64,000 nt of DNA from the NCBI GenBank assembly GCA_002189035.1, contig CM007990.1, positions 186,001-250,000 on the forward strand. The letters are read 5' to 3'. The translations under genes and the position numbers were made by a program. A model generated the notes under the pieces. The model saw only the letters and a list, made by a program, of their open reading frames with translations, did no database searches and was not told the origin of the DNA. Shown in pieces: positions 2,688-7,330 of this stretch (its first letter is position 1; each line of letters starts with the position of its first letter). Origin of the DNA: Utricularia gibba. Taxonomy: Eukaryota > Plantae > Magnoliophyta.

Positions 2688-4638
2688 CACCAAATTGAAG
2701 CAACGGAACAATAATCAGTGTTCGGAATTTAAAATGAGGTATACGTTATGCGGATCTCCCATACGACGACGTTTAGAGGAGAACTGTCGCATTTTGTATT
2801 CTGGGCTCCACTTGTAAACGCAAGCCCAACAACACCGACTAGATGAAGTAAATAACATTTACCCCTCGCCGGCGCCGTCGAAACACTAGGAGTGGTGTAC
2901 GGCGTAGTATCCGTACTTTCGCCGTCGTCTCCCACAAGTGTACCTACCTTTTGTCAATTTGAAACAATCTTTCAGTCTAAGCGCACTCGCGGCTGTTTCT
3001 GTCAGAAGACACCGCTGCTTCTCCGCTCATCGTGAAGCATCAACTTCAATGACAACCGCTTCCAATTATTTCCGATTGGAATTCGCGCATCGATGAGGTT
3101 AATTTCGTCGCGGTGAGCGCGATCCCGAAGCGCCGCCGCCACTCATTCTGTTGTGCTCAGCTGCAACAGGGTGATTCTTTTCTCCCGATGGTAAAGTGGA
3201 CTTACTTTTTCTGTAGTTCGTAATATCTAATGGATGGAACATTAACCAGCTTTCACCTCTTCTCTTACCCAATGCAGCTTCGAGACTATGATTTCTGATA
3301 CGTATTTTTGTACAAGTAAAATCGTTATCACAGAGAGCCCGCTGCAACAGTTACCTCAGGTAAACGTCAAATGTACATTCTGCATTTATAACAGATTCAA
3401 TTTCGAATTCGAACGTTGTGGCGGTTTAACAGGCCCAAGAATGTTGGGTGGTTGTAGTTCATCCACCCATCCCAGGAGGCCCATTACCACCACCACGACG
3501 ACCCTTGCTCTTGGTTCTTCCTCCAAAAGAAAGGACACACAGTGCTTGTCATTCGGGGTTATGATTCTGCCCACTGCTTTTCGTTTTCACATGACTTGAA
3601 CTAAACGACGTTGCAAATAATGGATGCGATGCCATAGATGGAGGAGGGGGAGGAATACTCAGAAAGCAATGAATACGGAAAAAGGCAAAGGCGTTTTAAA
3701 GGCGGAGGAGGGATTAAAGTTGTCTTTTCGTTTTGCAGTCCACGAACGAGTGTCAAAAGAGCAGCTTTTTCTCGCCCAAAGGGCGCCCACTTTCCACCAC
3801 CTCCTGCATCTTTGCATCATCCACTCGCAGGCAGGTTTCCATTTCATTCCACTCCTCCACACCCAGGCCAGGTGGTTTGGTTAGGTTAGTTTTCCCAGCA
3901 TCCTAAACCTCGTCTCCACAGCCATCCATAGCTGTGTCCAGGGATCGGAGATCATCCTCCCACCCGCTCATTAGTCGCCAGGATTGATTACGACGCTAAT
4001 CCTGGTGTAATAAAGTGGGAAAGCGCACAGCCTCCATTCCATTCCACCGGGATGATGCATGCTTTTGGAGATTGTTGGACTATCAATCATCAACCCACAA
4101 TCAATTACCACCGGCTTTTCGACATAATACTTACTATAAAGTAGTCACGGCATTAAGTACAGTTCCTTTGTTTAAAGAGATCATCCCAGGACCTGCCACG
4201 TCCTCCAACACCAATCTTAAACGAACCAACCGGATTGTTTCTAAATTTAGAATGTTCCAGTCTATGAATTTGATCATAACGCATATTAGAGGATGGAAAT
4301 TTTTCTAATTGGTCTGATTTTTGAATTCATTTTAGTATACAGCTTCCGTGATTGATTATCGGATAAGAATGGGGCTGTGATGAACCAAAACATGCATTTA
4401 GAGATATGGTATCATTGTTCCACTTTCAAGATATGGGTCTGGAAAAGTTATTCCATCTCTCAAAAGCCGCGCTTTCTTTTAATTTCAGATAAAAACGGGG
4501 ATTTTCGCCCGATCGGAGGGCCGTTTTCGAAGGACTAACAACTGTTTCGGACAATTTGATCGATGATTTGCAAGGGAAATCACACCAACTAAGAAGCGCT
4601 TTACAGGATTGGTTAAAGCGGAAATGTTTCTACATGTC

Positions 4639-6284
4639 CTAGAGTTTAAACACCGGGCCCTGGTCAAGACTTCCACGTATCCCCAGTTCTGCATCACCGC
4701 CCTGGATCTCGAGAGTTTCGTCGTCTAAACGAGCGTTTAAGTCCAGTTCAACATGAGATGATACGGATCCGTTTTCGAGCCTCTTTGTCCTCCGCGAGCA
4801 GGCGGTTTCCGGTGATCCATTGTCAACGGCACTCTTCGGTGACGTTTCCATTACTTCGCTGGAGGAAACAGAGTTGATGGATGTGAAAATGTTGCATTCC
4901 CAACGCTGATTAGTATTCTGTTTGTCGGTGGAAAAGTGGAAAGAATTTGATGAAGCGGAAGGGAATGTCGGGCCAAAAGAAAACGTTTCAGGCTCGGCTG
5001 GGAATTTCGTCGACCACTTGGTGGTGTCCTCATCCTCTGCACCTACTACAGAAGCTTCCAAGTCTTCGCCTCTGGATATTAAAAAAAACAGACCAATGAA
5101 AATGAGGATGAAAAGCAGTGAAATTGTTGATTTTGATGCATGATCCAACATACCCAGAATGTGAAATGAGACTCAGACCCAAACTATTAGCAGGAACAGT
5201 TACTGGGTGAAGTCCCCATATTGATTCGAGCGAGCGGCAGCCGTTTTTGCATCTCATGTAAGTTTGAAACGTAGCGATTCCCATTAGCCAAAATCGCCCA
5301 ATTTCTCCGACATCCGAGACCAATCTCCCGATCTCCATAATCATGTACTCTACACAGCTTCTGTAGTAATCATTTTCTCGCTCTATGTTTACAGTGTAAT
5401 GGCTGATCCAATTCAAATCTCCCAAGTATAAAACGACCCCTTTTCCGGCGAGACCCTGAACCAAGTTACTCAATTCCATCATTTTCCGGCGACCCAAGTC
5501 GCCATCGAGATCGCAGAAGGAATGCAGAGGAGGGATGGTTACGAATTTCACGTTTCTGAAATCTTCAACTACTTCTTCCATATCAACCAAATTCATCAGC
5601 TCCTTGATTGTAGCTTCCAGCTTTGAAATGCATTCTCCTACTATGACGAAACTCCGTCTTCTTCTGTTGGTGATCAGTGCCTCAATAATGGAGTACACAT
5701 CGTGTCTCCTAATTGCGGAACAGGGATTGTTGAGTTTGACATCTTGCTTTCATTTGATTTCTGGGAACTCATCTCCAAAGAAACCGCCTTTTCAACATTC
5801 GATTTGATTCGGGAGCTGCAGAAGCCAGCTTCCTTCATAACTCTGCTGACACTGGGATCATCCAGTATGGACACGATCAGCTGCTCGAGTTCGATTTTCG
5901 ATACACTCAACTGCTTCTGACTCTCAACCGCTCCGCGGCGGTGGTGAGCTTGAGCCCTTTTGAAAGCTGCAGCGAGAGCGTTCGAGGGTGACGGGTAACA
6001 TCGCCGGCCGATGACCGCGTCGGCCGTGGAGGAGGACGAAGAGGGGAGGCGGTTAAGAGCAACGCTGAAACAGAGCTCGAGAGCCTTGCACTGAAGAGGA
6101 TGTGAATTGGATTGCAAGCAGGCTGCTCGAAGTACCCCGGCTGCCTCCGACAGCATGGTGGTGGCGACGTGGAGGGGGTCACCTGTGCATGCCCTCGCCT
6201 CCGCGCGAGATCCACCGCCTGTTTCACCACCGCGGCAGCCTCCCCGCGGAGAGATTGATGTCCCCCATAACCTCGTGGTTTCAT
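4639..6284 (-). CDS. SMXL3: SMAX1-like protein of the SMXL3/4/5 clade, internally shortened (N + D1 + EAR-like C-terminus); two -1 frameshifts in homopolymers
   Basis: [95 protein letters not shown]. Intron 5153-5072 (GT-AG, phase 2). C-terminus VELDLN...[15 protein letters not shown]. Frameshifts at G5 6174-6178 and near 5749-5751. Confidence 0.85.
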
Positions 6285-7330
6285 ATTCCCACCTTCCGTT
6301 GCCCGCTCCCCTCCTGCAACTCTATATTTAAGTGGGATCTCATTCCTCCCAAGTCCACCCCTTCCTCAACATGAATTCATTAGAAAATACAGTCAAAACC
6401 CACTCACAAACAACATCACTTTGCCTGACACTCACATTAAACTACAATTTTGTTTTTTAAAACTCAACAATACCCTGTTTATTGGAATTGTTGTGCATAT
6501 AATTTTTCCTTCGCAGTGAGCTTAACAGAAATTGGAAAAATTCCATGGCAAAAAGCAAGAGAAAGGGAGAATATTCCCAGAGAATCTTAGGGTTAGCGTC
6601 TGCAAGTGGATATGTACGTAAAGGCGCAGAGTTCTTTTCATGGAGTCCGACTGGAGTAACATAACACCGTGTTTCAAGAATACCGTTTCCAAAAACAGGA
6701 GAAGGTGGAATCCATGTTGTCACATTTCAGCACCGCCAAAGGCAACTCGCCTTTACTCCGTTTCACTATTGCTCTTTGACCCCCCCGCACACTTGTTAAA
6801 TTACATTATCCCCTCCTATCTTTTGTTTTTAATGCAAATCATGCCTATCTTCTTTCGTAGTGGGACAACACCATCCCTTCCCCAAACTTTTTGGTTATTT
6901 GATTTAATGCCGCATCTTTTTGATATTCAAGTTATGTGGAGTGGGATGTGCTATTGGAAAAGGGAGACACAGCATACTGCTTTTACAGGGAGCCAAATAT
7001 CGCAGTATTCGAGGCGTTCCAAAGGCATAAACTTTGCATGCATGAGACATGGAACGTGCTTTCGCTGCTTAGAGAATGGTACTTGAAAGCTTTATCAAAA
7101 AATGGCTAACTTTCTCCTACAAAAGGCGTTCATCTTGAGGGTGGGCTTCATGATTCTCTCTCAGTGGGGTTAGAGGTTGGGCCGGGGTTCTATTGGGTTG
7201 CTAGAGGCCCAATAGTTATAAGGCGAGAATACCGTCGATTCCTAGTTCACATTTGGCCCGGATCGAAGGGCACGGGCGGTTTAAACTCACGGAAAGCGAC
7301 GGAATATCGGAGACAGCTAAGACGAAAAAC

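Follow-up and report, generated by a model that had tools for sequence, protein, structure and literature searches.

Can a gene of the SMXL3 clade lose the whole of its D2 domain and still encode a working protein? This question is raised by a locus on the minus strand of a 64-kb stretch of Utricularia gibba DNA (the window, by which we mean the whole stretch analysed), where the initial annotation, made from the sequence alone, had read an in-frame loss of D2 and of most of the M domain from an SMXL3 protein that keeps N, D1, an EAR-like LDLN motif and the C-terminus. Independent DNA and RNA data bear out this structural reading. With a probability of about 0.6, we consider that the locus holds a real, transcribed and intact SMXL3-clade gene without D2, here called mini-SMXL3, whose product most likely acts as a stable nuclear adaptor or repressor.

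As assembled, exon 1 of mini-SMXL3 changes frame twice, first in a C5 run near 6173 and then in a G3 run near 5722, after ...NSTIP, two 1-bp frameshifts that the first reading of the locus had missed. Logan contigs of four public runs (DNA 2013, DNA 2019, RNA 2017 and RNA 2020) were aligned to positions 4300-6500 (2.2 kb). All four DNA and RNA runs carried an extra G behind 5722 and behind 6173 (plus strand), indicating that the two frameshifts are homopolymer assembly errors and not lesions, and no further indel was found inside the gene in any of the four. The real mini-SMXL3 ORF is intact. The corrected CDS of 1566 nt encodes a protein of 521 aa with no internal stop, in agreement with the length of about 520 aa estimated initially, and the ORF is uninterrupted in each of the three haplotypes observed, which differ by about 0.5-1%. 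Genes of this assembly can look like pseudogenes through the loss of one base in a homopolymer, and reads need to be consulted before any of them is declared broken.

Apart from these bases, the 2013 DNA run matched the window exactly, and it probably comes from the clone that was assembled; the 2019 DNA run showed 19 single-base differences from the window over the 2.2 kb. DNA contigs of 7.1 kb (2013) and 6.4 kb (2019, a divergent haplotype) were colinear across the 2.2-kb region apart from the 1-bp gaps, which excludes a collapse of the region. The contigs of both RNA runs joined 5071 to 5154, skipping 82 nt, and spanned the full last exon to about 4574-4583, indicating that the mRNA is spliced as predicted. 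This mRNA, which ends about 60 nt past the stop codon, was present in two independent studies. The initial annotation had reckoned with a collapsed or misassembled region and with an unexpressed gene; the reads show neither collapse nor misassembly, the divergent haplotype having the identical structure, and the spliced RNA contigs of the two runs show expression. Although the two 1-bp errors in exon 1 prove the assembly imperfect, the colinear 7.1-kb and 6.4-kb DNA contigs, together with the 2017 and 2020 RNA contigs over the last exon and the splice joint, make it extremely improbable that the short form is an assembly artefact, whether through a collapse, a misjoin or a gene truly broken by frameshifts.

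With the frame corrected, the two-exon gene is laid out as follows.

5154..6284, minus strand: exon 1, with the ATG at 6284, encoding N and D1, aa 1-377 and two bases of codon 378 (three-frame translation, four runs)
5775..6284, minus strand: N domain, a double Clp-N, about aa 1-170 (identity to Lamiales SMXL3, conserved columns)
5154..5713, minus strand: D1, a degenerate nucleotide-binding domain, about aa 192-377 (Pfam PF23569 NBD_SMAX1)
5072..5153, minus strand: 82-nt phase-2 GT..AG intron (joint 5071 to 5154 in contigs of both RNA runs)
4639..5071, minus strand: last exon, aa 378-521 and the stop, with the M remnant, the D2 deletion junction, the EAR-like motif and the C-terminal tail (translation, RNA contigs, alignments)
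4846..5070, minus strand: decayed M-domain remnant, aa 379-453 (alignments with relatives)
4789..4866, minus strand: deletion junction SSSEVME...ACSRR (alignments, conserved D2 columns gapped)
4732..4746, minus strand: EAR-like motif LDLNA (site homologous to the family's invariant D-L-N, D692 L693 N694)
4642..4686, minus strand: C-terminal tail with the end ...GPVFKL, homologous to ...LGILENVDRRVVFK... (7/8 conserved tail columns kept)
4574..4638, minus strand: 3' UTR to the end of the RNA contigs (contig ends at 4574 and 4583 in the two RNA runs)

The acceptor AG of the intron ends at 5072 and the stop TAG occupies 4641-4639, so that the span 4639-5071 given in the initial annotation is exactly the last exon, as delimited by splice acceptor, stop and RNA contigs; this exon comprises 143 full codons and a split Gly codon. 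Along the protein, a double Clp-N is followed by D1, a decayed M remnant and the ACSRR...LDLNA...VFKL tail. Two N-domain blocks were placed at 6163-6203 and 5821-5871, the D1 motifs VIVGEC and LGDLNW at 5630-5647 and 5408-5425, and the last-exon blocks SSSEVME and ACSRR at 4846-4866 and 4789-4803, respectively.

Two observations concern the surroundings of the gene. Diversity is uneven across this small region: over its 339 bp, the 3' flank (4300-4638) shows about 2.4% divergence from the 2019 DNA run, with 8 SNPs and 1 indel, and the coding sequence differs from the same run by about 0.45%, with only 1 synonymous difference. In addition, an intronless 241-aa ORF at 1965-2687 on the minus strand looks like an NDR1/HIN1-like (NHL) membrane protein, and its promoter region borders directly on the SMXL3 gene at its 3' end; no exact match to this ORF was found in the gene collection.

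To describe what the protein has kept, we used columns at least 90% conserved among 52 SMXL3 proteins. mini-SMXL3 keeps 97/112 of these columns in N, 45/48 in D1 and 7/8 in the tail, 1/7 in M, and 4/55 in D2, where 47 columns are gaps. The N domain shares 71-73% identity over 160-167 columns with PF02861-bearing SMXL3 proteins of Lamiales; scanned directly against Pfam, the N piece of the window gave no match, but the assembly frameshift at 6173 cuts this piece. D1 matches PF23569 NBD_SMAX1 with an E value of 7.1e-28 and 98 bits (cut-off 27) over profile positions 12-207 of 212. Its P-loop position has no canonical Walker A motif (GxxxxGK[ST]), as in other SMXL3 proteins, and D1 would not be expected to be active as an ATPase. 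The LDLNA motif keeps the invariant D-L-N, with Ala as the fifth residue versus the usual Leu, Ile or Met.

The lost parts were delimited in alignments that took in the Genlisea aurea orthologue and full-length SMXL3 proteins of Lamiales, Solanales, rosids and basal angiosperms. The M remnant retains SSSEVME and a block matched by CSTKCQAEPE in Genlisea, and CCxxC and LPxWL are gone. Between SSSEVME and ACSRR, relatives have about 175-215 D2 residues. The stretch missing from mini-SMXL3 runs from KFKEFNAENL through VPWQ, TWLxFxGxDxxAKEKI, NPHRVFLVED and CDAIVVLSCE, after which come ACSRR...VELDLNARL and the tail. None of LPxWL, VPWQ, the TWLxFxG/AKEKI Walker-A-like block and the HRVFLVED block was found in the 521-aa protein; alignments and tblastn of the window thus agree with the original statement that LPAWLQ, VPWQ, D2 Walker-like and VEDIEQ segments are absent. 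The RGKT string is likewise absent from the 521-aa protein, trivially so since the whole D2 is missing. When five full-length relatives were used as tblastn queries, no D2-like coding sequence was detected anywhere in the 64-kb window. As the 64 kb hold no D2-like ORF, we rejected a gene fission that would have left D2 in a neighbouring gene.

In the AlphaFold2 model of Paulownia SMXL3 (mean pLDDT 63, domains 84-95), what mini-SMXL3 lacks corresponds to a confidently folded D2 block (residues about 478-656). The model shows the EAR region as disordered and ends in a confident strand (718-721), with a pLDDT of about 91. Since this strand adjoins folded domains in the model of the full-length relative, the tail of mini-SMXL3 may have lost its structural partner.

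We then assigned the gene to a clade. When D1 was the query of an exhaustive HMMER search, the best matches were Lamiales SMXL3-like proteins and Genlisea aurea EPS57404.1, and a second search retrieved hundreds of sequences annotated as SMAX1-LIKE 3. A maximum-likelihood tree of 60 taxa placed the gene as sister to that of Genlisea aurea (SH-aLRT 96). The Utricularia and Genlisea pair fell within a core-Lamiales clade of 27 rows (support 100), and it belongs to one of two Lamiales paralogue groups. The tree, which has no Arabidopsis sequence among its taxa, was anchored via the Mimulus sequence: the N-terminus of the Erythranthe guttata member of the clade equals the translation of SMXL3_Mimulus_guttatus mgv1a025529m of Walker et al. 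2019, indicating that the clade is SMXL3 and not SMXL9. The tree and its anchor to the SMXL3 label of Walker et al. therefore support the name SMXL3 originally given to the gene. Two SMXL3 paralogue groups are present in core Lamiales, for example in Paulownia (838/727), Sesamum (812/846) and Handroanthus (773/765), and several members of the group containing mini-SMXL3 have shortened M domains.

Equally short SMXL3 forms, which the initial annotation had allowed might be common, were not found among the sampled relatives. Genlisea retains D2, and so do all other sampled SMXL3 proteins, of 677-876 aa, those of Lamiales included. The Genlisea protein EPS57404.1 (hypothetical protein M569_17414, partial) is like its sister mini-SMXL3 in intron site and phase and in derived blocks such as STK..AEPE, and it too is shortened relative to other Lamiales; its intron of 75 nt lies after ...SLISPS in phase 2, with position and phase as in the Utricularia gene. 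The two proteins differ in what is gone: the Genlisea protein has lost most of M and has D2, with 45/55 conserved columns retained, whereas the Utricularia protein has more of M and no D2. These opposite patterns indicate that the two reductions are independent. At the Genlisea aurea locus (KE536891.1 12-1655), most of M is gone, with LPFWL followed almost at once by KFNEF, where D2 starts; this orthologue has kept the EAR motif and tail as well as D2.

Two proteins among the best D1 matches have a similar annotated length, Rehmannia glutinosa KAK6147328.1 (569 aa) and Phtheirospermum japonicum GFP96031.1 (598 aa), but they differ from mini-SMXL3 in that their loci still encode D2 and the tail (tblastn with Paulownia SMXL3 residues 474-727). 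Their short models were rejected as D2-less genes, being annotation artefacts or interrupted models. At the Rehmannia glutinosa locus (CM071934.1 7730-12567), about 4.8 kb, either a large intron or inserted DNA, separate the D2 halves, and part of D2 is left out of the 569-aa model. The best short match, P0272, was also set aside, as it proved to be exon 1 of a regular Lamiales SMXL3, downstream of which M starts normally. Searches with the Genlisea protein, the last exon and a 239-aa D1 piece found neither the gene's own protein nor another Utricularia orthologue, nor any relative closer than Genlisea; the last-exon query gave no match at all, and the best match of the 239-aa D1 query stood at 58%.

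The initial annotation had further suggested that the loss of D2 might be linked to reduced root or phloem development. This suggestion is not supported, since Genlisea is also rootless and its orthologue keeps a complete D2 (45/55 columns). The gene does belong to the Lentibulariaceae according to the tree, and in Arabidopsis SMXL3/4/5 function in the root protophloem, where roots are also the main site of what SMXL3 does through its EAR motif (PMC12966999, PMC10104830). However, the EAR motif retained here is the very element on which root functions depend in Arabidopsis, whereas root loss alone would predict the reverse, and we regard it as quite improbable that D2 was lost in adapting to a rootless body with reduced vasculature, or as a direct result of that body plan. 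Relaxed constraint with a miniature-genome deletion bias accounts at least as well as rootlessness for a shrunken M in Genlisea and a missing D2 here.

A more serious competitor takes mini-SMXL3 as an expressed gene en route to loss. In this view, its roles in root and phloem were no longer needed, or paralogues took them over; constraint relaxed, M decayed and D2 was then deleted in a genome strongly biased towards deletion; and the rest of the ORF has escaped interruption only for lack of time. Variation within the species gives some substance to it. The 12 coding SNPs among the three haplotypes comprise 9 nonsynonymous and 3 synonymous changes (4:2 in exon 1, 5:1 in the last exon), and these small counts, with a pN/pS near 1, hint at relaxed constraint, with which they are compatible, and would be improbable under strong constraint. 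On the other hand, once the assembly errors are removed, the gene runs for 1563 nt without a stop or frameshift in the three haplotypes, and it is correctly spliced, two independent studies both having recovered its mRNA. Loss of the M motifs LPxWL and CCxxC speaks for decay, but the open 75-codon M remnant in front of a conserved EAR motif and tail fits selection for the C-terminus. The independent loss of most of M in Genlisea suggests a family-wide relaxation, and the two SMXL3 paralogue groups in core Lamiales make a back-up copy possible; against this stand the conserved columns kept in D1 (94%), N (87%) and the tail (7/8), with D1 better kept than in the D2-bearing Genlisea orthologue.

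The comparison with Genlisea in D1 bears directly on this point. mini-SMXL3 keeps 45/48 conserved columns versus 38/48 in Genlisea, and its identity to outgroups is 60-68% versus 47-54%; the retained parts have thus not drifted faster than in an orthologue that has D2. Sequence evolution in the family is very fast, with a dS of 1.2 to >2 between Utricularia and Genlisea; the dN/dS values relative to Genlisea (0.14 for N, 0.24 for D1) are uninformative on the time after the deletion because dS is saturated. The retention of conserved columns argues for continued function, and part of the residue conservation could be inherited from a recent full-length ancestor. Taken together, we consider a gene on its way to loss to be unlikely, but an explanation to be kept in view.

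We therefore favour the reading of mini-SMXL3 as a stable nuclear adaptor or repressor. According to this proposal, one in-frame deletion inside the last exon has removed the whole D2, and the M domain has decayed. N and D1, with its GDLNW motif, would bind transcription factors or chromatin partners such as OBE3, a short and probably disordered linker would connect D1 to the EAR motif and tail, and LDLNA would recruit TPL/TPR (TOPLESS-type) co-repressors. Properties that depend on D2, namely multimerisation through the C-terminal half and contacts with D14, KAI2 and MAX2, would be lost, and the product would be a stable adaptor independent of MAX2. The functional N-D1-EAR repressor put forward in the initial annotation is plausible in this light: the spliced and expressed mRNA, the intact ORF, the conserved N, D1 and tail, and the presence of GDLNW and LDLNx are in its favour, while the 9:3 SNP ratio, which fits relaxed constraint, is not. 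Nuclear repressor activity, TPL binding and present-day selection are what we infer from these sequence features.

More tentatively, mini-SMXL3 may be a naturally selected minimal SMXL, in which N, D1, linker, EAR motif and tail suffice in this lineage for the essential role of SMXL3 in planta, the loss of D2 perhaps being tied to a simplified vascular and rootless body. If this were true, the D2 half of a ClpB-derived co-repressor, with any oligomer or TPL-hexamer scaffolding that it provides, would be dispensable.

In the literature searched, no paper mentions SMXL proteins together with Utricularia, nor does any of the papers listed for carnivorous or rootless plants or Lentibulariaceae. 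The SMXL field seeks to separate an 'input' (D2, receptor and MAX2 contacts, multimerisation) from an 'output' (the N domain and the EAR motif). Arabidopsis SMXL3 cannot do without its Clp-N segments and the GDLNW of D1, and its LDLNx EAR motif adds to its function, above all in root traits (Tolnai et al., PMC12966999). mini-SMXL3 has in common with Arabidopsis SMXL3 (AT3G52490) and the angiosperm SMXL3 clade the double Clp-N, D1 with GDLNW, LDLNx with the tail, and the absence of RGKT. Different from the other members of this clade, which have about 680-860 aa, it has 521 aa and lacks the M motifs LPxWL and CCxxC, and it is missing all of D2, whereas only D2b is missing from ordinary SMXL3 and SMXL9. 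SMXL3 and SMXL9 are already without D2b and the RGKT degron (Walker et al. 2019, PMC6728956; Tolnai et al., PMC12966999), and mini-SMXL3 carries this trend to its end.

The closest engineered parallel is SMAX1 N210 fused to the EAR-type motif SRDX, which rescues smax1,2 and is insensitive to karrikin and GR24 (Chang, George & Nelson 2025, PMC12184505), indicating that an architecture of N plus EAR can work. mini-SMXL3 and SMAX1 N210-SRDX both combine an SMXL N-terminal 'output' region with an EAR-type motif and have no D2. In contrast to the fusion, which is artificial, comes from another clade, has no D1 and carries the foreign SRDX, mini-SMXL3 is natural, a putative repressor, and has D1 and its native EAR motif and tail. 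As an expressed natural D2-less allele in which the residues known to be important in N, D1 and the EAR motif are preserved, it offers a ready-made test of the need for D2 in the hormone-independent SMXL3/4/5 branch, and it constitutes a natural counterpart of the minimal SMXL proteins engineered in the laboratory.
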